Sequence record: NC_042100.1
DNA: 64,000 nt
Strand: one strand, 5' to 3'
This document shows positions 11,544 through 34,409 of the stretch, in pieces. The notes beneath the pieces were generated by a model that saw only the letters and a program-made list of their open reading frames with translations, was not told the origin of the DNA and did no database searches. Position 1 is the stretch's first letter; each line of letters opens with the position of its first letter. Both the position numbers and the translations under genes were made by a program.

Positions 11544-11568
11544 ATTCAAATCTATATTATCAACTAGA
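11544..11568 (+). promoter_or_regulatory. Class I phage promoter motif (putative early/vRNAP)
   Basis: ATTCAAATCTATATTATCAACTAGA aligns without gaps to five other intergenic copies. Confidence 0.55.
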
Positions 11569-11600
11569 TGGATCTTCAAATAACACGTCAGGAGCTTACC

Positions 11601-12149
11601 ATGAATCACTTTATAGAGACTCTGTTATTCTTTCAATTTTACGAAAACATCGAACCTTGGTTAGAAGAAAGGTTTAAGGCAATCGATGAAGGGCTGGAAG
11701 CCCAACCTTGTGGTCAGGTCGTTCGTTTTAACGAACTGGATGTCACTTACCAAATCACAAAATCTGGAGTAGTACGACTCCACGTAGATTGGTTGCAACA
11801 CCGAGCCTACGGACAAGTGTACAATTTTCATCGAGAGGATGACTTAGCGTTACAGTCGTTTAAAGATACCTTCAAAGAACATGTTTCACCTAAGAAGGTA
11901 AAATCGGCGAAGTTTAATCTCACCCAAACGATTAAAGCGAATATACCTAAACGAATATTAGACTCTATGGAGTCAGGGGAACTCACTCATTACCAAGCAG
12001 TGTACGGGACACTCAATACTCCGTTTTCTGCTTTTGTGCAACCTCGTATTCGAATCTTTGGTGGACGTAGTTACGAACTCGTCTTCAGTTTTCAAACCCC
12101 ATTAGGAGGATATAAAGAATGCGTAATCGGAGATCTGGAAACAGCTTAG
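11601..12149 (+). CDS. Hypothetical protein
   Basis: The track starts at 11568. AGGAG at 11590-11594 favours the ATG at 11601. Confidence 0.7.
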   Translation: MNHFIETLLFFQFYENIEPWLEERFKAIDEGLEAQPCGQVVRFNELDVTYQITKSGVVRLHVDWLQHRAYGQVYNFHREDDLALQSFKDTFKEHVSPKKVKSAKFNLTQTIKANIPKRILDSMESGELTHYQAVYGTLNTPFSAFVQPRIRIFGGRSYELVFSFQTPLGGYKECVIGDLETA

Positions 12150-12742
12150 ATTTAATTAACCGCACTCATTTGTTGTTATTGTTAAAAGACCTAACCACGG
12201 AACTAAAACAAGTCATTAATTTAAGGATTAATGATTTTGACCAACATAACCGAGTTAAGGTTTTCAACATCATCAATGAAAAGAGAGAATGTGAATGCAC
12301 GTTATTCAATGAAGGTGAGGAGTTAATACTCTCCCTCTATGGATTACGTCATGTACTAGGAGAAGGAGTGAGTGAAGGTTTTGTATATCGTTTCGATCCT
12401 AAATCTAAAGAAGAGATCGAAGAAGTACAAACCCTGTTGTACGAAACCTTTGAACCTTACTTTAAGAAATACCTTACTGACGTTATCTTGAACGATTATT
12501 ACCAAGAGTTAACGGGTCGTATATCCGCGATCAAAACTTCTAATCTCTGGGATATCCGATCTCATTTGAGTAAAGAACAAGTCACGGGCTTATATTTCTT
12601 TGACAAATACTTACGAGCGGAACTGGTTATGGTTAGGCGTGGTAAGTCTAAAGGGAAAGCTCACTATCGTATCACTCGCACTAGTTTATCCTTTGTTAAA
12701 GATACAGTGACGTTACCTGCGGATAACTCACTAAGTGATTAA
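12119..12742 (+). CDS. Hypothetical protein
   Basis: 207-aa ORF with AGGAGGA 8 nt upstream of the ATG. Confidence 0.7.
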   Translation: MRNRRSGNSLDLINRTHLLLLLKDLTTELKQVINLRINDFDQHNRVKVFNIINEKRECECTLFNEGEELILSLYGLRHVLGEGVSEGFVYRFDPKSKEEIEEVQTLLYETFEPYFKKYLTDVILNDYYQELTGRISAIKTSNLWDIRSHLSKEQVTGLYFFDKYLRAELVMVRRGKSKGKAHYRITRTSLSFVKDTVTLPADNSLSD

Positions 12743-12755
12743 AAACTAAGTGACA

Positions 12756-12767
12756 TACATTATATGT
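12756..12767 (+). promoter_or_regulatory. Class II promoter core (TATG type)
   Basis: TACATTATATGT is identical to the core at 22049-22060 and precedes a ~380-nt non-coding stretch. Confidence 0.5.
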
Positions 12768-12830
12768 TACAAAAACCTTTTTCTCACTCTTTTTTATCCA
12801 CTCTAAAATGACGTATAAAAACGCATTTTA

Positions 12831-12930
12831 GGGAGGGGTTTGGGGTGGGTTCTAGGTCATGGGTGGGTTCGTAGGTCAAGTTGAGTCAAGTTGAAGAAAG
12901 AGTCAAGTTGAGAAAGTTTAAGTCAAGTTA
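12831..12930 (+). repeat. G-quadruplex motif plus GTCAAGTTGA direct repeats
   Basis: GGG-A-GGGG-TTT-GGGG-T-GGG at 12831-12849. GGGTGGGTTC(G)TAGGTCA occurs twice. GTCAAGTTGA at 12875, 12885 and 12902, and GTCAAGTTA at 12922. Confidence 0.8.
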
Positions 12931-13146
12931 AAAAGATTGGGAAAGAAAGTTAGAACTTTTATATTAATATATCTAACTATAGAGTATGACCTCCTTACAA
13001 CGTAACGAGTATAACGAGTGAAGTGGTTAAGGTAAAGAGTCATACGTTAAGAAGGTATAGATACATAGTAGGATATCCGTTAAGGAGTCCTACTAGGGTT
13101 TATACTGCATTTTGAATATTTATACGTTAATTAAGGTTATTAGACC

Positions 13147-13556: not shown

Positions 13557-14027
13557 ATGAATGCAGCAAATCGAATTAAAGTAAGTAAAGCACTAATCCC
13601 AGTGATCTTAGGTTGGGTAGAACTTGCTACCTTTACAGACGCTAAGCGTTTAAAGACCAAACACCAAGGACATAAGGTTATAGCGAGCCTTACGTTGCCT
13701 TGGGATAAGGATAAACAAATAGCTGTAAAAGTATTATCCGTAGATACCGTAAGCTTTACGGTCGTCGTAGAAGGTATGGCTTACGTAGATCGTACTGGGA
13801 TCTGTTTAAACGTAATGAACGAAGAAGTGTTATTCAACGAAGCGTATGAAGCTTTGAGAAGACGATCTGAAGGTTACTTAGACGTTTTACACCACTTAGC
13901 TAAAGAAACGCCGGAACTATTACCAGAGCTTACTTTCGAAGTAACGGATAGACACTTTACCGTTACACATAAAACTATACAAGATATTGGACTGGCTTTT
14001 CCTATTAACAAAAAACGAGAGTTTTAA
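13557..14027 (+). CDS. Hypothetical protein, short member of the paralog family
   Basis: RBS AGGAG. Its N-domain (LTLPW...TVVVEGMAYV) matches 14031 (FKLPW...TIVTEGLRHL). Confidence 0.7.
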   Translation: MNAANRIKVSKALIPVILGWVELATFTDAKRLKTKHQGHKVIASLTLPWDKDKQIAVKVLSVDTVSFTVVVEGMAYVDRTGICLNVMNEEVLFNEAYEALRRRSEGYLDVLHHLAKETPELLPELTFEVTDRHFTVTHKTIQDIGLAFPINKKREF

Positions 14028-16116: not shown

Positions 16117-16461
16117 ATGGAAAAACATAATTACCAAGAAATGGCTTTGTCGTTAGTAGAACAAACTATTAGCGAAGGTAAAGGTGAGGTCTTAACCCAC
16201 GAAGGTAAGGTTACTTTAAAATTAGAAGGTAACGACTTACTCCTTATCATCAACGAAATCGTACACCGTTACAATGGATTACGCCTGCTAGACCGTAAGG
16301 GTCTAGCAGGATCCATAGAACGAGTACTTAACTTAACACTAAACACACCTGACTTAGGACACGAAGCTCAAGTGTTGTTCGATTTAGACCGAGGGACCTT
16401 CTGGCTGGATCCCCTTAAGCGCGTCATCACCAACTACTTACTAAACAGGAAAGCAGCATGA
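16117..16461 (+). CDS. Hypothetical protein, paralog of 13147
   Basis: 114-aa ORF with RBS AAGGA. ATGA overlap with the next gene. Confidence 0.7.
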   Translation: MEKHNYQEMALSLVEQTISEGKGEVLTHEGKVTLKLEGNDLLLIINEIVHRYNGLRLLDRKGLAGSIERVLNLTLNTPDLGHEAQVLFDLDRGTFWLDPLKRVITNYLLNRKAA

Positions 16462-17411
16462 ACACTAAATTAATCAACCTAGGTTTAAAAGGTTTATTTC
16501 AACACGCACTTCGTTCGATCCCTATTATCGTGGAGAAAGACTACTCCAAAGCTATGATGCATGATCTCTACGCTGCAAGGGTAACTAGTGGTGCGTGGGT
16601 TTCCCTCTCGTTTTATTGGAAAGAAGGTGACACGATTGTTGTTACAACAAAAGGGATGTCCCACATTGCTCAAACAGATTTTTCTTTTGATTACAACCCA
16701 AAGTACGGACATGACTTTGAAAAACTCATTCCTCACTCATGGAAACAAAAAGTCTCTGAAGGTGTTATCCGAACTTTCTTAAAGGCAGCCGACACTTATA
16801 ACTTCGAAACGGGATTGATCAGGAGTAAGGAAGGTGAAACTCTAAGTTACTCAATGGGGTCTGACTTGGTACCGGATTTGAAATTCAATCTTAATCCGAC
16901 TTTTGAATACGAACCTATCGAGTCATTAGTTAGAATGAGAGAGAAAATATATTTGTTGTTGGTGAAAGTAGCGCTCACAAACCTACAAGCATATATCGAA
17001 CACGAGATCGCCACACAAGCTCATTTAAGTGAACTCGGGAAACCTTTAGTGGATTTCCCGCACATTCAAGGTGACCGATTACAAGTAGGATTAAGACAGT
17101 ACGGTAGCGCGACACTCCACTTCGTTATCCCACTACCTTCTGGGGAAGAGTTGGTCTACTTGGTTCCTGAGTCCCGAGAAGACCGTCAAGTTTGGTATAA
17201 ACATATTCAAGAACTCGTCAATGAGGAATTAGGGTCTTTTGATCATTCTTCAGTATGCCGAGGGTTATCGCAAGTTTATCGCAACACCAATAACGGGATG
17301 TTTGTTTTTAAACCCACGCCTCACGACGGTGTTGACGTAATGGTCGTTGACCAGTCACTTTTACCGTGGGCAAGTGAACATACTCGTGAGATCTCTTACA
17401 TGCTCAAATAA
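16458..17411 (+). CDS. Hypothetical protein, paralog family
   Basis: 317-aa ORF. C-terminal LHFVIPLPSGEELVYLVP resembles 14031 IYLVLDTGEGLMEFLVP. Confidence 0.75.
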   Translation: MNTKLINLGLKGLFQHALRSIPIIVEKDYSKAMMHDLYAARVTSGAWVSLSFYWKEGDTIVVTTKGMSHIAQTDFSFDYNPKYGHDFEKLIPHSWKQKVSEGVIRTFLKAADTYNFETGLIRSKEGETLSYSMGSDLVPDLKFNLNPTFEYEPIESLVRMREKIYLLLVKVALTNLQAYIEHEIATQAHLSELGKPLVDFPHIQGDRLQVGLRQYGSATLHFVIPLPSGEELVYLVPESREDRQVWYKHIQELVNEELGSFDHSSVCRGLSQVYRNTNNGMFVFKPTPHDGVDVMVVDQSLLPWASEHTREISYMLK

Positions 17412-18265: not shown

Positions 18266-18297
18266 AGTTATTTCCTAACGGATAATATATTATATGT
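18265..18297 (+). promoter_or_regulatory. Class II promoter with upstream AAGTTATTTCCTAAC box
   Basis: AAGTTATTTCCTAAC-GGATAA-TATATTATATGT. The same box and spacing recur at 22028-22060. Confidence 0.65.
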
Positions 18298-18592
18298 ACT
18301 AAAAAGAATCCGTCGAAGACCCCCTGAAAAGGATGGGAAAGGGTTATTTTTACATACGAGTTATAGTAGTACTCCTTAGAGTGATCTATGAGGTACGAAT
18401 AGTCACGGTGAGTGTTGTAGTACGAAGTACGTAAACACGATAAAAGGAGTGTACTACGTATAACGAGTAGTAGTTCATGTAATAGGCTTGCTGTAATCAG
18501 ATAAAGGAATTATATCCCTATATTACTAAGGGGATATAAAACTGAGTCATTTAAGTTATTAGGATAATAACGTTAGTAGGAGTAGATTCAAC

Positions 18593-19443: not shown

Positions 19444-20622
19444 ATGTCCATAGATACACTAGGAATCGACGATGAAATCGTTTTGACCACAATAGCAAAC
19501 ATTAATGCGCATTATAAAGAAAAACGTAAATTCGTCGACATTGCAAAAATGCAAGACATCGCCCCAGATATATTGACTGTGCGTTTTCTAAATCAAGGTT
19601 TAGAAACCCCTACGCATTACTTGAAAGAGTTACGTAAGGATTTAGCTAAGCGTTTAGTTTTTGAAGGCGAACTTTCACTAGAAGAAATCGCTAAAACCTT
19701 AAGTTATGATAAAACATCAAACTTTTACGTTTGGTATCTATCCGTTTTTGGAGAACGTCCTACTAAGGTCCGTGCACGCATGGGGTTAAAATCAAAAAGA
19801 CCGAGTTTAGGTTTAGTCAATGCGGTTATCAGCTCCATTGTCGAAAATATCGACCTTAATCCACATTTATACAAAGATGTTAATGTATTAATAAACGACA
19901 GTATTTATACAACAACTTACATCAGACAGAAGTTCATTGAACTGCACGGAGTAACCCCTAGGGCTTATTTGTTAAATAAGCAACTAGAGTACGTTGCCGA
20001 GCAAATCAAAAACCACGGGTATAAAGAAACCCGTCTGCTGGAAATGACCATCTACAACGCTCCTACTGGACTTAACAAAGCTTTTAAAGCAAAGTACGGT
20101 ATGACTACCAGTGAATTTGGTGAATCAAAATCTATCGGTATGTGGGCCAAGGTCCATGGTGAAAACGTCTGGATACTCCCTTCCCTCATGGAAGAGATAA
20201 TTGATAACGTTACCGAAAACCTGCTTGAAAATCGTCCCCACTTAACTGAGCTGAGAGAACTTTACGGAGTAAACACTTCTTCTTGGGAAAGAATGTTTAC
20301 TCTGTACACAGGCATGTTACCTAGTAAGGCGCGCTTATTCATCCGATTGGAAATAGTGGTGTACTTTTTACAAAACACTCGTTGGAAGTTTTCTAAGATC
20401 TTAAGGAAGGTTGGTTCGGATTATGAATACGACATCAGAAGATACTTAATGGCTAATTACGGACTGACTCCTGCGGAAATCCGTAAACATAAAGGTCCAC
20501 TCACTCGTCGTAACAAAACCAAGCAGTTTGTTCGTTTTGTTAAAACTAACGCCGACTTATGCATTAGAGAAGACGATATCCGTCTGGGTAAAATAAAGGA
20601 AACTGAATTATGTACCCTGTAG
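19444..20622 (+). CDS. AraC-family HTH-repeat protein (three DNA-binding domains, no effector domain)
   Basis: Three AraC C-terminal patterns: TPTHYLKELRKDLAKRL...SLEEIAKTLSY...FGERP; TPRAYL...AFKAKYGMTT; PSKARLFIRL...YGLTPAEIR. Confidence 0.75.
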   Translation: MSIDTLGIDDEIVLTTIANINAHYKEKRKFVDIAKMQDIAPDILTVRFLNQGLETPTHYLKELRKDLAKRLVFEGELSLEEIAKTLSYDKTSNFYVWYLSVFGERPTKVRARMGLKSKRPSLGLVNAVISSIVENIDLNPHLYKDVNVLINDSIYTTTYIRQKFIELHGVTPRAYLLNKQLEYVAEQIKNHGYKETRLLEMTIYNAPTGLNKAFKAKYGMTTSEFGESKSIGMWAKVHGENVWILPSLMEEIIDNVTENLLENRPHLTELRELYGVNTSSWERMFTLYTGMLPSKARLFIRLEIVVYFLQNTRWKFSKILRKVGSDYEYDIRRYLMANYGLTPAEIRKHKGPLTRRNKTKQFVRFVKTNADLCIREDDIRLGKIKETELCTL

Positions 20623-21335
20623 ATAAAGAATCCAGAATTCGTTTAATGGAAGATCTGGACAAATGGATAAATGAACACTACTTAGAAAAAGTCACCGTCA
20701 AAGACCTAAGTCACCAACTAGGTGTGTTCATCCCAGATGTTTACCGTCTGTTTGCTGAACAACGCAACACTACCCCGGGAGAGTACCTCCGACGTAAACG
20801 TTTAGTTAAAGCCAAAGCTTTGTTAGAATCAGGAATCCGTCCAACGCTGGCTGGAGCCCACGTTGGGTATTCTCACTTCCAATCTTTCGTTAAAGAGTAT
20901 AAAGCTTACTTTAAACGCCACCCTCGCGAAGATTACTCGGATACCCTTGAGGTCCCGACCATGGACTCTTATTCTAAAGAAACTATGGACCGATATTATC
21001 CTAGTGAGTTGCGTGAGAAGATATTGAATTATTTGCGTAAAAACATCAAAGTGAATTTCAATTACGCTGATGTAGAAAAGAAGTTTGGATTACCAGATCG
21101 TAGTTTAAGCGAAATGTTTGAACACTATTACGGTAAATCCTATCGTGAATGGAGAAAGGATACTAGGATGAAATTAGCTAAGGAGTTACTCCACAAAAAT
21201 CCAAGTGTTAAGATTTCAGACTTAGCGACTACCGTAGGTTCTTGTAGTGCGACCTATTTACGGAAGCAATACCAAGAAGTCTATGGAGTTAATATTGTTG
21301 AGCTCCGGGAAACTTTGAGAGGTGTTCGTGTCTGA
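20610..21335 (+). CDS. AraC-family HTH-repeat protein (two DNA-binding domains)
   Basis: VTVKDLSHQLG...TPGEYLRRKRLVKAKALL...VGYSHFQSFVKEYKAYFKRHP, plus a second copy ending ISDLATTVG...YGVN. Confidence 0.85.
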   Translation: MYPVDKESRIRLMEDLDKWINEHYLEKVTVKDLSHQLGVFIPDVYRLFAEQRNTTPGEYLRRKRLVKAKALLESGIRPTLAGAHVGYSHFQSFVKEYKAYFKRHPREDYSDTLEVPTMDSYSKETMDRYYPSELREKILNYLRKNIKVNFNYADVEKKFGLPDRSLSEMFEHYYGKSYREWRKDTRMKLAKELLHKNPSVKISDLATTVGSCSATYLRKQYQEVYGVNIVELRETLRGVRV

Positions 21336-22029
21336 TAAGAAATCGAAAGAACTCAAGAAGCTCAAAAGTGCCGCCAAGAAATATTGTTTGGAACCTAATG
21401 CCTCGGAATTAGTGTTAAAGAAAACCCTGTTTTCTTTACCTAAAGTCATTAAAATGTTCCGTGATGCAGGTGAGGGAAGTTTGTATGATTACATCACTCA
21501 TTTAAAAATGCTGGAGGCGAAGAAACTCTTAGATGACACCGATCTTAATCTGACTTCTATTTCCAGAGCCATTGGCTACGCTGATCGTAAATCCTTGAGA
21601 GAAAACTTTATTAAGCAATTTGGTATGTATCCTTTGGATTACCGCAACCGACCGAAGACCAACGACCTAGCTTGGGATTTGTTTAAATCCCATCCTAAGC
21701 TAACTGTACAGCGTCAGACGTTTTTGTTGGATCATGTCAAGAAGCATTACAAGGATTCTGATTTAAGTATTCAGACACTATCAGACCGATTCCGTTTAAC
21801 CCACCAAGACATAGACCTGATTATCAATCATCACTATGGGTCAGGATTGAAACAACTTTTATTAGACCTGCGTTTAAATCAAGCGCACGCTAAACTACCT
21901 AATTATTATAAGTCGGTGCGCCAACTCGCTGAGGAGTTAGGGTTTCTTGACTTTAATTATTTCGTAGTGAAGTTTGAAAGGAAATACGGAATGGGTCCCC
22001 GACGTTATCAACAACACGCACGTCTTTAA
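21322..22029 (+). CDS. AraC-family HTH-repeat protein (two DNA-binding domains)
   Basis: YITHLKMLEAKKLL...ISRAIGYAD...FIKQFGMYPLDYR and LRLNQAHAKL...LAEELGFLDFNYFVVKFERKYGMGPRRY. GTG start. Confidence 0.85.
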   Translation: MFVSDKKSKELKKLKSAAKKYCLEPNASELVLKKTLFSLPKVIKMFRDAGEGSLYDYITHLKMLEAKKLLDDTDLNLTSISRAIGYADRKSLRENFIKQFGMYPLDYRNRPKTNDLAWDLFKSHPKLTVQRQTFLLDHVKKHYKDSDLSIQTLSDRFRLTHQDIDLIINHHYGSGLKQLLLDLRLNQAHAKLPNYYKSVRQLAEELGFLDFNYFVVKFERKYGMGPRRYQQHARL

Positions 22030-22060
22030 GTTATTTCCTAACTCAACGTACATTATATGT
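22028..22060 (+). promoter_or_regulatory. Class II promoter with upstream box; predicted +1 at G22059
   Basis: AAGTTATTTCCTAAC-TCAACG-TACATTATATGT. It contains TATG, the motif used by phiKZ nvRNAP with the G as +1. Confidence 0.65.
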
Positions 22061-22486
22061 GAGCGGTACAAGATTAGGTTTAACTAGACTAGCGTGTCCG
22101 AAAAGAAAAGGTGTATGCCGCGAGTCCGACCTAGGAAGTTATCCCTTCATTACAACCGCTCACAACTCTTTTGGTTCAGAGGAAGTCCTCCTTGTCAACA
22201 TCGATGTCACTAAAGCCATTCTCTGAACCACCCTATTCGAACAGAAACCACTACTTTTTGTTCGTAGGACACTCGAGCCTTTAACTCAGTGTCCACAGCG
22301 GTACACCCCTGACCGCTTTAAAAATGGAGAGTGTTTCCTCAGCTCCCACACTCCGCCAAGGGATGCTAAGCCGAGGCTAGCCGGCTGGGTTCTTCGACCG
22401 CGTAAGAATCCAGTTCGGGTAATTTCAGTATTGGCACTGAGTTCCACTGCTTTGACCATCCCCTTCGCCGGGGATGGTGCTTTTTT
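22059..22486 (+). ncRNA. Putative structured non-coding RNA (~430 nt), family not recognised
   Basis: Has its own promoter and terminator and no ORF in the track. Serial stems: GTGAGCGGT/ACCGCTCAC, GGTTCAGAG/CTCTGAACC, CCTA..CGAACAGAAA/TTTTTGTTCGTAGG, GGACACT/AGTGTCC, AGCGGT/ACCGCT, GAGTGT/ACACTC, CTGGGTTCTT/AAGAATCCAG. Confidence 0.65.
22455..22486 (+). terminator. Intrinsic terminator closing the putative ncRNA
   Basis: ACCATCCCC-TTCGCC-GGGGATGGT followed by GCTTTTTT. Confidence 0.75.
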
Positions 22487-22527
22487 GCATTTTAAATATT
22501 TTTAACTAAACTTTAAAGGAGTTTAAT

Positions 22528-23493
22528 ATGTCTACATTACGTGCATGGTGTATTGGTGGTGCGGGTATTAACATCGGTTCTGCATGGAAAAAGTCGCTAA
22601 GAAACCTTCCTATCTCTAAAGTAGAGTTCATCGGTTTAGATACGTCTACTAACAACAAACCGGATGATGACTCGTTCATTTTAGAGTGTCCACCAAACAC
22701 TCGTGGTGGTGGTAAGAAACGTACTTTGAATCGTGACCTCATTCCTGATTTTGTTAACCAAATGTTGGTGAAACATAAAGCGGGTGATTTCAACGTTGTG
22801 ATTTACAGTGGTGCAGGCGCGTCGGGTTCTACTATCGGTCCTTTCTTAGTTCGTGCTCTCATGGAAGCAGGTATTCCTGTAGTTTCGTTCCTCGTGATCG
22901 ATCAAACCACAGACATCGAACTGGACAACACGATCGCGACTCTACGTTCCCTAGATGGTCAGCGTAAGCATTTTGATATGCCGGTCGTAATGGATGTACT
23001 GCAAAACGACGAGGCTTTAACTCGCGGTGAGTTAAACAAAATTGCTGTCGAGCGTCTCAACTTGCTATCACTGTTCCTAACGGACAAACACGAAGAGTCA
23101 GACTACGAAGACATCCGTCATTTGTTGGACTACTCTAGTGCGGTCGATATCCCACCGTCTCTTACTCGTATCGAGTTCTATGACGGTCTGACTATCGATA
23201 AGCGCCAAGGTAGTGCAGTAGCGAGTTTCTCTCTATACAGCTCTCGTAACGACATCCGTTCCGTCCAAATTGGTAAAGGTTATCGTGTGACGGGTGTGAT
23301 GCATCCAGATGCGATTACCCCTAACGATACAGGTGAACTACACATGATGCTTGAGTACGATAGCCTAACAGAACAAATCATCAATGATATGGAGCGTTCT
23401 AAAGAAAAAGCGGTAGAACGCCAGACTCAATTCACTAAGTCCCGTTCTAAGGACCTCACAGAGGGCTCTGACAATTCCGGGATGGTCTGGTAA
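22528..23493 (+). CDS. phuZ: PhuZ phage tubulin
   Basis: T1 loop CIGGAGINIG, IGLDTS, GGGKKR, signature-like SGAGASGST, DxxD (DYEDI), and a short acidic/aromatic C-terminal tail. Confidence 0.92.
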   Translation: MSTLRAWCIGGAGINIGSAWKKSLRNLPISKVEFIGLDTSTNNKPDDDSFILECPPNTRGGGKKRTLNRDLIPDFVNQMLVKHKAGDFNVVIYSGAGASGSTIGPFLVRALMEAGIPVVSFLVIDQTTDIELDNTIATLRSLDGQRKHFDMPVVMDVLQNDEALTRGELNKIAVERLNLLSLFLTDKHEESDYEDIRHLLDYSSAVDIPPSLTRIEFYDGLTIDKRQGSAVASFSLYSSRNDIRSVQIGKGYRVTGVMHPDAITPNDTGELHMMLEYDSLTEQIINDMERSKEKAVERQTQFTKSRSKDLTEGSDNSGMVW

Positions 23494-30025: not shown

Positions 30026-30046
30026 AACTGTGTGTCCATTATATGT
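30025..30046 (+). promoter_or_regulatory. Class II promoter upstream of the chimallin leader
   Basis: TAAC-TGTGTG-TCCATTATATGT has the same TAAC-N6-core spacing as 18265 and 22028. Confidence 0.5.
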
Positions 30047-30142
30047 AGATAAAACTTTCTCCAGCCGTAAGGTTGGGGTGGATAGGACCAGAATTGAAAT
30101 ATTTAAGACATAAAATCGTAAGGTTTTGAAGTCCCTAAATAT

Positions 30143-30167
30143 TTTCAGTCCTATATAACCTAGGTGT
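30143..30167 (+). promoter_or_regulatory. Class I phage promoter motif upstream of chimallin
   Basis: TTTCAGTCCTATATAACCTAGGTGT. Confidence 0.7.
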
Positions 30168-30247
30168 TAAGCAAGTGGTATTATTGCGATACCTTAATGT
30201 TTAATAACGTTATTGAATATTGAAACCCGAATAATAAAGGATCAATT

Positions 30248-32408: not shown

Positions 32409-34409
32409 ATGTCGTCTCCAACGAAAGATATTGCAGTAGAGGTATTAGCAAAGGAATCTTTTGACGATTTGCTTCCTATCAAACAGTTCCAGCGTTATCA
32501 GGAACAATCCGGGAAGAAATTCTTCGACGATCCTAGTTACTACGCTCCGCTTTATCCAGACTTCCGTGATTTCAATTACGCCCATGATACATCTAAGTCA
32601 CAACCTGTTTATCTGAACGACTACGACTTCTGTTTAGAAGAAGATCGTGAACGTTTGGAGAAACTGATTCGTGTGGACTTTGATACGGACACTTTTGAAA
32701 CCATTGCGTCGTGTGGTTGTGATAAACCTTTAAAGGGAAACCATTTAATTGGTTCTGGACGGGTTTGTAGAAACTGTGGTAACCAAGTGGAGCGCTTAGT
32801 TGATACTGAGTTATCGACCAAAGTTTGGTTACGTCTACCTACCGGTGTCCAATCATTCATCAACCCTGCGTTCTACAAGACATACTTGCAAAAGATCGCA
32901 ACAGCTTCACCTAAGATAGAGATCATCACTTACATCATCGATCCAACCTATCGTCGTAAGGTCAACTCACAAAGTTCGGAAAAACTTCGTGATCTTCAAT
33001 CTCATTTAAAACGTCTGATGACTCGTTTCGATCTCAACGAGTTTGTTGTTAATGCTGATACCATCATGGATTACTTTTTGTTAGGTGAAGGTCGAACTTT
33101 AACAGCACTTAAGAATTCCGATGCTAAAGAGATTATGTTGGGTTACTTTGATTACAAGGATATTGTTTTCACTAAGTATCTCCCGATACCTAATAAACTC
33201 TCTACCGTTATTGAAAAGGCGGGTAAAGAACGTTACGCTTCTTCAAGTCAGCTAAAAATGGATTCGACTTACATGTCCATCGCTGATACTAAAGATAACA
33301 CTGACCTATACCAAGTAAATGAATTCGACATCCAAGAATCCATCGATCGTGTTGGTAAAGGGATAGTGGCGTTAGCGGCACAAAACTCTGCTCATTTAAA
33401 AGACTTCATGTTCCCTAAACCGGGAGCGGCACGTAAACTGGTGGCGTCTGGCTCTTTACCGATGACAGGTCGTTCAGTAATCACCTCTAAGACCGGAATA
33501 CATAACCCGGGGATGATCGAAGTACCATGGATAATGGCACTCGCCCAGTTAGAGAAACAGATACTGTCCCATTTGTATCGTAAAGGTTATTCGCCGATGG
33601 CGGCACTGACCAAGATCAGTAAAGCCGCCCATTACCTCGACCCCGATATCGACGCTTTCTTTACTTATCATGAAGAACGCAATGATATTGTGTGTAAAGC
33701 AGGTCGTATGCCATCCATTCAGTATTTGTCTCGTCGCACCTTCTTTGCGCGAATTAAACGAGATCTGGGAGATCAATCTATTGGTCTACCGATACTGTCC
33801 GTGTCCAATTTTAATGCCGACTTCGACGGTGTGCAATCGCCGTCATTAAACTTCTTTAATTGCTGGAACCCCGTAAAACTCTATTTACTACAATAGTTGA
33901 GCGATCGACTATGAATGTGGGCGAAAGTCAGAAATAAAAATAGAGATGACCTAAGCTTAATGGAAAACCAACTTTACCAAGGATAAGTGTGGAGTGCTAA
34001 GGGATCACATCAATCGGAAATCAGCAGCGAAGACTCTCTCGTAGAGTAACGTTCAACGACTAGGTGGGGAGAAGTCTCCTCGAACAGGAAGAGTGGATTC
34101 AAGGAATGATGAAGCTAAGATATAGTCTCGCCCGGCATGAGAGTGTCGGAAGTCATTAACTTGGGGTGATGACTGGTGAACTAACGACTCACTTTAAAAA
34201 GCATCTTAACGGATGTAACAATGTATGCGGACCAGATGGCGCTATTCTTCTTACCTGACTTAAGATCTAAGGCGGTGAGTTATGGCGCATTCGGTCACCA
34301 ATCGGTATTTGATGAAAACAAACCGTTCTCAATCAGTCGACATTACAAACAGCCGTCGACTAACTTGATGAACATCAATAACGTAATGCGAAAACTGGAG
34401 TTCAAATAA
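32409..34409 (+). CDS. Non-virion RNA polymerase beta' N-terminal subunit (phiKZ gp55-like), spliced: exons 32409-33830 and 34230-34409
   Basis: Zn ribbon CGC...CRNC, MTGRSVIT, GRMPSI. The spliced frame restores the catalytic NADFDGDQM and gives 533 aa. Confidence 0.9.
33831..34229 (+). mobile_element. Group I (IA-type) self-splicing intron, ORF-less, 399 nt
   Basis: P1: exon GACGGT pairs with IGS GCCGTC, with U.G at the splice site. P element AATTGCTGGAA (33858), Q AATCAGCAG (34019), R GTTCAACGACTA (34051), S AAGATATAGTCT (34117). P9 has a GAGA loop. Terminal G at 34229. Confidence 0.93.

Follow-up and report, generated by a model that had tools for sequence, protein, structure and literature searches.

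Chimalliviruses, the nucleus-forming jumbo phages, transcribe their genomes within a protein-walled nucleus that separates transcription from translation. To our knowledge, almost nothing is known of the non-coding RNAs (ncRNAs) of these phages; the candidates reported for phiKZ are short and come without structural evidence. Here we describe a region of Vibrio phage Aphrodite1, a nucleus-forming jumbo phage of the genus Aphroditevirus, that encodes a previously undescribed plus-strand structured ncRNA matching no catalogued family. The region, a 100% blastn match to the Aphrodite1 genome, lies in a stretch of 64,000 nucleotides (nt) of that genome, hereafter the window (MG720308.1 / NC_042100.1; record coordinate = window coordinate + 62000). 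Within it, a 498-nt spacer (22030-22527) separates the third of three HTH_18/AraC-type genes (end 22029) from phuZ (start 22528), and the RNA unit proper is the 428 nt at 22059-22486 on the plus strand. Nothing is annotated in this spacer in the GenBank record of Aphrodite1; in that of phage USC-1, the single annotation is a 37-amino-acid (aa) minus-strand 'hypothetical protein'.

Short RNAs produced by premature termination upstream of genes have been described in phiKZ (Putzeys et al. 2024, PMC10914365), and these 5' untranslated region (5'-UTR) ncRNA candidates share several features with the Aphroditevirus RNA: both are encoded by nucleus-forming jumbo phages, are non-coding, lie between a phage-polymerase promoter and an intrinsic terminator upstream of a same-strand gene, and have no assigned function. 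They differ in size and in how they were found. The phiKZ candidates measure 71-250 nt, came from sequencing and not from a fold supported by covariation, and are unrelated in sequence to the Aphroditevirus RNA, which is predicted from sequence at 428-572 nt with 12 helices; short RNA and read-through were observed to coexist in phiKZ. phiKZ itself has no comparable spacer next to phuZ. We considered its '5'UTR_p40' candidate as a phuZ neighbor and set it aside, since p40 denotes the locus PHIKZ_p40 and the gaps beside phiKZ phuZ are only ~50 nt on each side. A second set of counterparts comprises ROOL and GOLLD, large phage-associated ncRNAs that form homo-oligomers by cryo-electron microscopy (PMC12286853), and the abundant ~800-nt ncRNA of Vibrio phage ICP1, whose role is unknown (PMC7567579). 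These RNAs, which are transcribed in lytic growth, resemble ours in being large, ornate, phage-encoded, and without known function. Unlike them, the Aphroditevirus RNA is smaller, has no tRNA genes nearby (none in the window), and is confined to one genus-level clade; it matched neither GOLLD nor ROOL in Rfam even at E ≤ 10, and gave no blastn match to the ICP1 ncRNA, although that too comes from a Vibrio phage. In kind, then, it is something already known, either a phage ncRNA between a phage promoter and a terminator upstream of a gene or a large phage ncRNA, yet it is much larger and structurally better supported than the phiKZ examples.

Searching phage genomes with blastn, we found the spacer in six (ten database records): Aphrodite1, USC-1, 5 TSL-2019, 2 TSL-2019, Photobacterium phage PDCC-1, and phiKT1019. 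These provide five distinct sequences in three lineages, on which the comparisons below rest. In every carrier, the spacer sits between the AraC-like triplet and phuZ, on the same strand as phuZ. At aligned positions, the Aphrodite1 RNA shares 76% of its nucleotides with that of phiKT1019 and 84% with that of 2 TSL-2019 (76-77% for phuZ), and nucleotide identity between lineages (RNA, 76-84%; phuZ, 76-79%; AraC-like genes, 56-70%) equals that of phuZ and exceeds that of the AraC-like genes. The spacer is ~640 nt in three of the lineages, with an RNA of ~570 nt (428-572 nt overall), and the extra length of these long forms consists of whole added hairpins. Three whole hairpins and one apical extension have been gained or lost between lineages while the core was kept, a modular pattern that we count as support because it is typical of functional RNAs. 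No reading frame is conserved: insertions and deletions break the frames differently in each lineage, a 17-aa ATG open reading frame (ORF) at 22324 is absent in the relatives, and none of five stop-to-stop pieces of the region has a significant Pfam or PHROG match. A protein-coding gene or pseudogene was rejected on these grounds, in keeping with a preliminary description of the stretch, made from its letters alone, which had seen no convincing ORF here.

The plus strand of the region has a minimum free energy of -147 kcal/mol (z = -5.6), the minus strand a z of -2.5, and the longer homologs reach z = -7.2 and -7.7. Because coding controls from the same genome also reach z of -2 to -3, we treat stability as no more than suggestive and rely mainly on covariation. 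We aligned the homologs in three blocks (5' domain, M hairpin, and 3' domain) and counted pairs on RNAalifold-derived structures, from which a spurious pairing of an A-run with the terminator U-tail had been removed. In the resulting consensus model of 12 helices and 112 pairs, 96.0% of cells are paired in the 5' domain, 100% in the M hairpin, and 94.9% in the 3' domain; in a control with the 3' partners slid by 1-3 columns, only 10-50% are. Eighteen of the 112 pairs have changed on both sides (four in the 5' domain, four in the M hairpin, and ten in the 3' domain), so the preliminary description's suggestion to collect homologs upstream of phuZ and look for covariation was borne out in five sequences. 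No more than 1 of 500 column shuffles reached the observed share of paired cells, number of both-side-changed cells, or covariation score; for the number of compensatory pairs in the M hairpin, 9 of 500 did so, and counting extra pair types told us nothing.

Two further features bear on the strand and nature of the molecule. Paired cells include 61 G·U and 7 A·C combinations, an excess that points to plus-strand RNA, since the opposite would be expected for the minus strand or a DNA cruciform. In addition, 71% of paired columns are invariant, compared with 51% of unpaired ones, and the M and Hb hairpins combine four compensatory pairs each with invariant loops. Compensatory helices and strand-specific G·U pairs, the generic marks of a structured RNA, are both present. 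The covariation support appears solid, though below R-scape grade with five sequences from three lineages; judged by these substitutions, the fold of the RNA is preserved by evolution, and we are highly confident that the plus-strand structured element is real.

The 5' domain (22059-22163 in the RNAalifold consensus) is closed by helix P1, whose strands are GTGAGCGGT (22059-22067) and ACCGCTCAC (22155-22163). It encloses helices at 22076-22085/22137-22146, 22089-22092/22131-22134, 22096-22101/22125-22130, and 22110-22112/22117-22119, the fourth of which is weak in phiKT1019; its 30 pairs include four compensatory ones, two of them in P1. The M hairpin (22173-22229) is built on the helix GGTTCAGAG (22173-22181) / CTCTGAACC (22221-22229), in which four of nine outer pairs are compensatory, and its tip holds an invariant palindrome, CATCGATG (22199-22206; CAUCGAUG as RNA), between variable flanks. 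Hairpin Ha (22238-22264) has 10 pairs, with 98% of cells paired, one compensatory change, and five one-sided switches between G·U and G-C. Hairpin Hb (22267-22294) contains four compensatory pairs around features that never change, namely its closing G-C pair and its loop CCUUUAA (CCTTTAA in DNA, 22278-22284). In hairpin Hc (22297-22317; AGCGGT/ACCGCT), by comparison, six of six pairs are invariant, as is ACCCC within a loop rich in C, ACACCCCTG (22303-22311). A further hairpin of this type, GATCGCC-ACCCCCAT-GGCGATC, again with invariant ACCCC, is found in the long forms and shows a compensatory change in phiKT1019. Hairpin Hd (22329-22353) has seven pairs, one of them compensatory, and an invariant CAGCTCC (22340-22346) in its loop.

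A conserved single-stranded linker, AAGGGATG (22358-22365; RNA AAGGGAUG), follows. CCUUU of the Hb loop can pair with AAGGG/AGGGG of the linker in all five sequences, and in phiKT1019 the C-run of the Hc loop and the G-run of the linker are each one base longer; the linker is thus a possible pseudoknot partner of the Hb or the Hc loop, in a pairing that is conserved but short and unproven. Next comes He, an irregular rod of 73 nt (22364-22436) with 28 pairs and 95.7% of cells paired. Eighteen of these pairs never vary and three are compensatory; 1x1 mismatches and many G·U pairs are invariant, as are the 15-mer GAGGCTAGCCGGCTG (22373-22387; RNA GAGGCUAGCCGGCUG) and the tip TTCGACCGC (22393-22401; RNA UUCGACCGC), and an extra apical hairpin, AAAGAC...GTCTTT, is inserted in 2 TSL-2019, PDCC-1, and phiKT1019. 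Just 5' of the terminator lies the largely conserved single-stranded CCACTGCTT (22444-22452), with an invariant core CACTGCTT (RNA CACUGCUU) and a first base that is A in 2 TSL-2019 and PDCC-1; it could alternatively pair with AGCGGT of Hc. All of these parts are on the plus strand. The preliminary description had named eight stems, six of them right or nearly right. Its first helix does start at the predicted +1, P1 being present from G22059; its stem at 22173-22229 is M, that at ~22232-22268 is present as 22238-22264, and those at 22267-22294 and 22297-22317 were exact. Two real stems were mis-bounded, since the 3' strand of the one at ~22328-22346 reaches 22353 and the one at ~22385-22413 is just the tip of He, and the stem at 22426-22440 is not conserved and conflicts with the base of the rod.

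Several sequence elements recur within the region. AGCGGTACA occurs twice (22062-22070 and 22297-22305, plus strand), as the 5' strands of P1 and Hc, the complementary ACCGC is present at three sites (P1, Hc, and the He tip), and ACUGCU appears once, so several mutually exclusive pairings are possible; the segments concerned are all invariant except P1 in phiKT1019. A search for internal repeats, paralogous modules, or repeat arrays in the region returned only 9-14-nt repeats at chance level. The palindromes (CATCGATG, GGCTAGCC, CTAG three times, and CCTAGG; CAUCGAUG and GGCUAGCC at the RNA level) were rejected as evidence of dimerization: their number is as by chance, with ~1.7 eight-base palindromes expected in 430 nt, and they stand out only for their invariance.

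Among known RNA families, Rfam 15 at gathering thresholds yielded only a group I intron (33793-34149) in the whole window and nothing in the region. At E ≤ 10, the region gave only four chance-level matches (15-18 bits, against thresholds of 45-60), and two long forms gave zero and four. This collection covers group I and II introns, RNase P, tmRNA, 6S, signal recognition particle RNA, riboswitches, GOLLD, ROOL, OLE, HEARO, raiA, self-cleaving ribozymes, CRISPR repeats, CsrB, and Qrr; ARAGORN found no tRNA or tmRNA genes in the 64-kb window. The preliminary description was therefore correct that hallmarks of tRNA, tmRNA, RNase P, and group I introns are absent, and its proposal of an unrecognized structured ncRNA of ~430 nt stands, given the missing Rfam match, the covariation, and the G·U asymmetry. 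One look-alike deserves mention. TAAGCCGAGG plus CTAGCC (22366-22382, plus strand) reproduces stem-loop 1 of Vibrio Qrr2-4 in its loop and 3' flank, minus GTCAC (Qrr2-4 sequence taken from primers in PMC7221000), and the host is a Harveyi-clade Vibrio. The match is probably a coincidence: its nominal p is 0.005-0.011 in Aphrodite1 and USC-1 only, and 0.16-0.49 in the others. We rejected a Qrr mimic or sponge because the likeness is not kept across the family, duplex energies are no better than those of shuffles, and there is no Rfam Qrr match. Look-alikes of a sigma-54 promoter, a marbox, and a CRISPR type I-F repeat (~22430-22452) are not conserved in relatives and were likewise discarded.

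We next considered the ends of the unit. Late promoters of phiKZ contain TATG with the +1 at its G (PMC4666361; PMC7598289), TATG is required for transcription by the non-virion RNA polymerase (PMC4666361), and some middle promoters have an extra upstream motif centered near -24 (PMC4666361; PMC7598289). The putative Aphrodite1 promoter core, ATTATATG (22052-22059), includes a TATG at 22056-22059 that is invariant in five phages and would place the +1 at G22059. The 9-mer ATTATATGT is found four times in the window (12759, 18289, 22052, and 30038), always on the plus strand and always intergenic, against a chance expectation of 0.77; none of 100 shuffles reached four. A candidate upstream element, GTTATTTCCTAAC (22030-22042, ~-29 to -17 from G22059), resembles in position the phiKZ middle-promoter motif centered at -24. 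The identical 13-mer precedes the second ATTATATGT copy at 18268-18280, and both sequences are kept with small changes at both loci in USC-1, 2 TSL-2019, PDCC-1, and phiKT1019. The recurrence of intergenic ATTATATGT, the shared 13-mer, and their conservation make it very probable that the RNA has its own phage-polymerase promoter. At the other end lies a predicted intrinsic terminator (22455-22486), with a 9-bp stem (six G-C) at 22455-22478, then GC and T6 at 22481-22486; it is conserved in five of five sequences, with one compensatory pair and a variable loop, and its end lies 42 nt before phuZ. By sequence, TATG and intrinsic terminator together make this a candidate independent transcription unit under the phiKZ rule, and the preliminary description had read it in the same way, as having its own TATG promoter and terminator.

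The other ATTATATGT copies head further intergenic stretches on the plus strand. The first belongs to a second non-coding unit of ~380 nt (12757-13146) with the same kind of ends and z = -4.9: it starts with ACATTATATGT (12757-12767) and has a hairpin at ~13068-13095, followed by TGCATTTTGAATATTT and then gene 13147. This unit contains GTCAAGTTGA(G/A) four times (spacings of 10, 17, and 20 nt), GGGTGGGTTC twice, and an AT-rich stretch, repeats that look like iterons or an origin. The copy at 18289 (unit 18268-18592), which has the same upstream GTTATTTCCTAAC, begins a 295-nt leader before gene 18593, and the copy at 30038 (30036-30247) precedes the chimallin gene (30248) by 210 nt, with CTATATAACCTAGGTG (30151) and TTGAATATT (30213) also present upstream of that gene.

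These findings can be combined in a working model, to which we assign a probability of roughly 0.42: a discrete RNA functioning in folded or protein-bound form. The phage RNA polymerase would start at G22059 of the ATTATATG promoter, following the phiKZ-type TATG rule with an upstream element at ~-24. The transcript would adopt the fold indicated by covariation, in which P1 closes the 5' domain and five hairpins and the irregular rod of 73 nt follow. Most polymerases would stop at the strong terminator 42 nt before the phuZ start codon and so release a discrete RNA, while a minority of read-through transcripts would add to phuZ expression. The released RNA would then work as a folded molecule, whether as a protein-binding scaffold or decoy or as a self-assembling structural RNA, and would be recognized through its invariant helices, mismatches, and loops. 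The invariant Hc helix, the G·U pairs of He, the 1x1 mismatches, and the greater invariance of paired than unpaired positions argue for recognition of shaped helices rather than single-stranded seeds. That a discrete RNA species exists, by termination or processing, we regard as probable. A main role in trans, as folded or protein-bound RNA, is our more tentative proposal, favored because the size and modularity resemble those of structural RNAs and because the terminator is strong.

Several points weigh against this model. In the literature searched we found no transcriptome for Aphrodite1 or its relatives, so that we infer the +1, the 3' end, and the abundance of the RNA. Folding at z of -2 to -3 is seen in coding controls as well, and five distinct sequences in three lineages limit the covariation statistics and make R-scape-grade support impossible. 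The AraC operon has no terminator of its own, so the RNA could be its 3' UTR. Because all carriers form one syntenic clade, co-occurrence with the AraC genes is uninformative for the idea that the RNA is a scaffold for AraC-type proteins, which figured, beside a protein decoy and a precursor of several small RNAs, among the roles proposed in the preliminary description; that list left out both a cis-acting phuZ leader and an AraC-operon 3' end. Finally, a purely cis role would account just as well for an RNA placed immediately ahead of phuZ on its strand and for the layout at gene 13147 (promoter, long leader, hairpin, TGCATTTTRAATATTT, gene), and the AT-rich TGCATTTTAAATATTT just before phuZ may not be a promoter at all, since a different motif, CTATATWAYCTARGTG, looks like the early consensus.

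The last of these points lead to a cis-acting leader or attenuator of phuZ, which we consider possible though on balance unlikely, and nearly as likely as a role in trans. Here the ATTATATG promoter would be the source of middle/late phuZ mRNA, the short RNA would be a by-product, and the number of polymerases that get past the terminator would be set by the folded leader of 428 nt, acting by itself or with a phage protein or the polymerase bound to it. The RNA lies directly upstream of phuZ in all carriers, gene 13147 shows the identical layout, and two modes, short RNA and read-through, were seen at 81% of phiKZ 5'-UTR terminators (PMC10914365). The tubulin gene itself (22528-23493, plus strand), which any read-through would express, also lacks CTATATWAYCTARGTG and may depend on the distal promoter. 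That motif occurs four times on the plus strand of the window (30151, 35587, 45693, and 58926; 0.17 expected), with chimallin, gene 35641, and an RNA polymerase beta gene following after 49-97 nt, and resembles CTATATTACTAG before phuZ in other chimallivirus contigs; it may be the early-promoter consensus of Aphrodite1. Distant chimallivirus contigs also show TATG, a structured spacer, and a terminator before phuZ.

Other observations fit such a leader poorly. We found no conserved antiterminator among the homologs; the strongest contender pairs GGGATG at 22360 with the terminator's CATCCC over 5-6 bp and is degraded in phiKT1019, and the other alternative pairings around AGCGGU are invariant and hence uninformative on attenuation. 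The terminator is strong, and known attenuators are far smaller than this fold of 430-570 nt, in which whole hairpins come and go. The HK022 put RNA, the T-box, and protein-dependent antiterminator leaders resemble the Aphroditevirus RNA as structured RNAs that run from the +1 to an intrinsic terminator and a gene, yet it is 4-6 times larger than they are, has no conserved terminator/antiterminator alternative that we could find, and would be made by a non-canonical phage polymerase. Moreover, beyond the terminator comes a near-invariant AT-rich block that resembles a promoter in its own right. In the 42 nt before phuZ (22486-22527, near-invariant in five phages), TGCATTTTAAATATTT is followed by the Shine-Dalgarno sequence AAAGGAG (22515-22521), and the block could be either a promoter-like element of phuZ or an element of its 5' UTR. 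The same arrangement, with TGCATTTTGAATATTT/TGCATTTTRAATATTT, precedes gene 13147, and TTRAATATT occurs 25-36 nt before four plus-strand ATGs, that of chimallin included.

A base-pairing riboregulator is improbable. According to this explanation, the loops CCUUUAA, ACCCCU, and CAGCUCC would pair with Shine-Dalgarno regions of phage or host mRNAs, and the U-tail of the terminator would serve as an Hfq-type 3' end. The size and hairpin-array layout recall Staphylococcus aureus RNAIII, and RNAIII, 6C (PMC6486639), and RsaE are all hairpin arrays of a few hundred nucleotides that end in a terminator and have apical loops rich in C. The invariant loops on covarying stems fit as well, and two of the loops find partners in the invariant ribosome-binding region of phuZ, CCUUUAA being complementary to UUAAAGG (22513-22519) and AGCUCC to GGAGUU. 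This complementarity is, however, just 6-7 nt, no peptide is encoded, and the host of the phage is Gram-negative, so that we see a resemblance only. In a target search that covered the phage window, TTAAAGG occurs 19 times (11 expected), mostly away from start codons; relatives do not keep the match ahead of the first AraC gene, and unpaired columns are less conserved than paired ones. Anti-Shine-Dalgarno pairing with the flanking genes was weak.

We give still less weight to a passive 3' UTR or insulator that stabilizes and terminates the AraC-operon mRNA and keeps upstream transcription out of phuZ. A terminator scan found none between the AraC stop (22029) and 22455, so the RNA may also arise as the 3' end of the operon, and phage ncRNAs processed from 3' UTRs are known in PAK_P3. 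For this purpose, though, a single terminator hairpin would suffice; 400 nt at phuZ-level conservation with 18 compensatory pairs is far beyond the needs of stabilization, and a recurrent, conserved promoter motif stands exactly at the 5' end of the first helix. Least probable is an element acting at the DNA level (as an origin, a packaging signal, or an array bound by protein) or else a coding gene that is small or has decayed, for which the palindromes CATCGATG and GGCTAGCC, the three CTAG, CCTAGG, and the minus-strand ORF annotated in USC-1 might be cited, but against which stand the G·U to A·C ratio and the strand difference in z, both of which argue for RNA, the number of palindromes expected anyway, and the lack of a conserved ORF, family match, or repeat array.

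To define the distribution of the family, we built two covariance models, R1 from the 3' domain and R2 from the 5' domain, and both recovered known carriers only. Among 18 IMG/VR, 5 metagenome, and 10 GTDB loci with an invariant motif, covariance-model scoring gave only chance matches. Around the phuZ genes of Miami, FishSpeaker, pAEv1810, and RisingSun, covariance models with filters off, nhmmer, and short-word blastn gave no match, and 15 further IMG/VR chimallivirus phuZ loci (R2 with filters off, R1 with default filters) gave nothing convincing, the sole match being a marginal one on the minus strand (E = 0.027). By these searches, the family does not extend beyond a single genus-level clade, made up of the Aphroditevirus phages and phiKT1019.

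The position upstream of phuZ may nevertheless be shared more widely. About half of the other sampled chimallivirus phuZ loci have at least 300 nt of ORF-free sequence upstream. We located such spacers in the IMG/VR contigs L058 (1925-2500), L059 (1968-2500), L060 (2054-2500), L062 (84-530), and L063/L064 (2046-2500); in L058, L059, L060, and L063 they are ORF-free over 450-580 nt, with z of -3.9 to -6.9 in the sense and -2.2 to -3.0 in the antisense direction. The order of elements in these spacers is ACTATGT, a structured segment, a terminator, (C)TATATTAC(TAG) (a CTATATTAC-type motif), and phuZ. In the lineage of L060, L062, and L063, compensatory changes were seen by eye in several hairpins, and none of the spacers has detectable homology to the Aphroditevirus RNA. 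Klebsiella phage Miami (NC_070950.1) has an ORF-poor stretch of ~1 kb upstream of phuZ (1991-2970 of locus L026), with tiny ORFs annotated on mixed strands and z of -4.3 on the plus and -6.9 on the minus strand, which is 93-100% identical in six related phages and likewise not detectably homologous to the Aphroditevirus RNA. At 2238-2314 it contains CUGAUGAG...CGAAAC, then a hairpin, then GUC, a hammerhead-like core that scores below threshold against Hammerhead_3 (23.7 bits, E 0.004 in a 181-nt search) and 19 bits against RAGATH-1-hammerhead.

As these spacers of other lineages are not homologous, what is conserved, if they are real RNAs, is position and not sequence. It is doubtful, on present comparisons, that nucleus-forming jumbo phages generally keep a lineage-specific structured RNA gene, with a TATG-type start, a fold, and a terminator, directly upstream of phuZ. 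Should they do so, a new phage RNA class would have the Aphroditevirus RNA as its best-supported member, be it a ribonucleoprotein (RNP), a self-assembling RNA, or a polymerase-binding leader, which could couple middle/late transcription in the phage nucleus to the PhuZ cytoskeleton or act as a cytoplasmic decoy; the phuZ-upstream spacer would then be a general regulatory or RNP locus of nucleus-forming phages. If it proves to be an attenuator leader and nothing more, no leader yet described for a non-canonical phage RNA polymerase would be larger or better conserved. This large RNA gene is kept by selection as stringent as that acting on phuZ, a core gene, and its defined fold, ends, and invariant surfaces make it a tractable entry point to chimallivirus ncRNAs. 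Nucleus-forming phages are under development for aquaculture and clinical phage therapy, and antisense oligomers have already been used against jumbo-phage mRNAs.

The neighborhood of the RNA contains further features of note. The three AraC-type genes upstream (19444-22029, plus strand) consist of HTH_18 repeats only, with two or three such stretches each (Pfam HTH_18, E 1e-25 to 9e-25) and no ligand or dimerization domain; at 56-70% nucleotide identity between lineages, they diverge far more quickly than the RNA or phuZ. They are an odd cargo for a phage that does not use the host RNA polymerase. Long ORFs of 114-317 aa fall in unannotated gaps of the GenBank/RefSeq record (11568-12149, 12119-12742, 13557-14027, 16117-16461, and 16458-17411, plus strand) and are probably missed genes; 300 nt at 16086-16385 fold with z = -6.1. 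The group I intron detected by Rfam (33793-34149, plus strand; RF00028, 55 bits, E 3e-11) splits the gene of an RNA polymerase beta subunit, which the record gives as 32409-33896 plus small ORFs from 34221.

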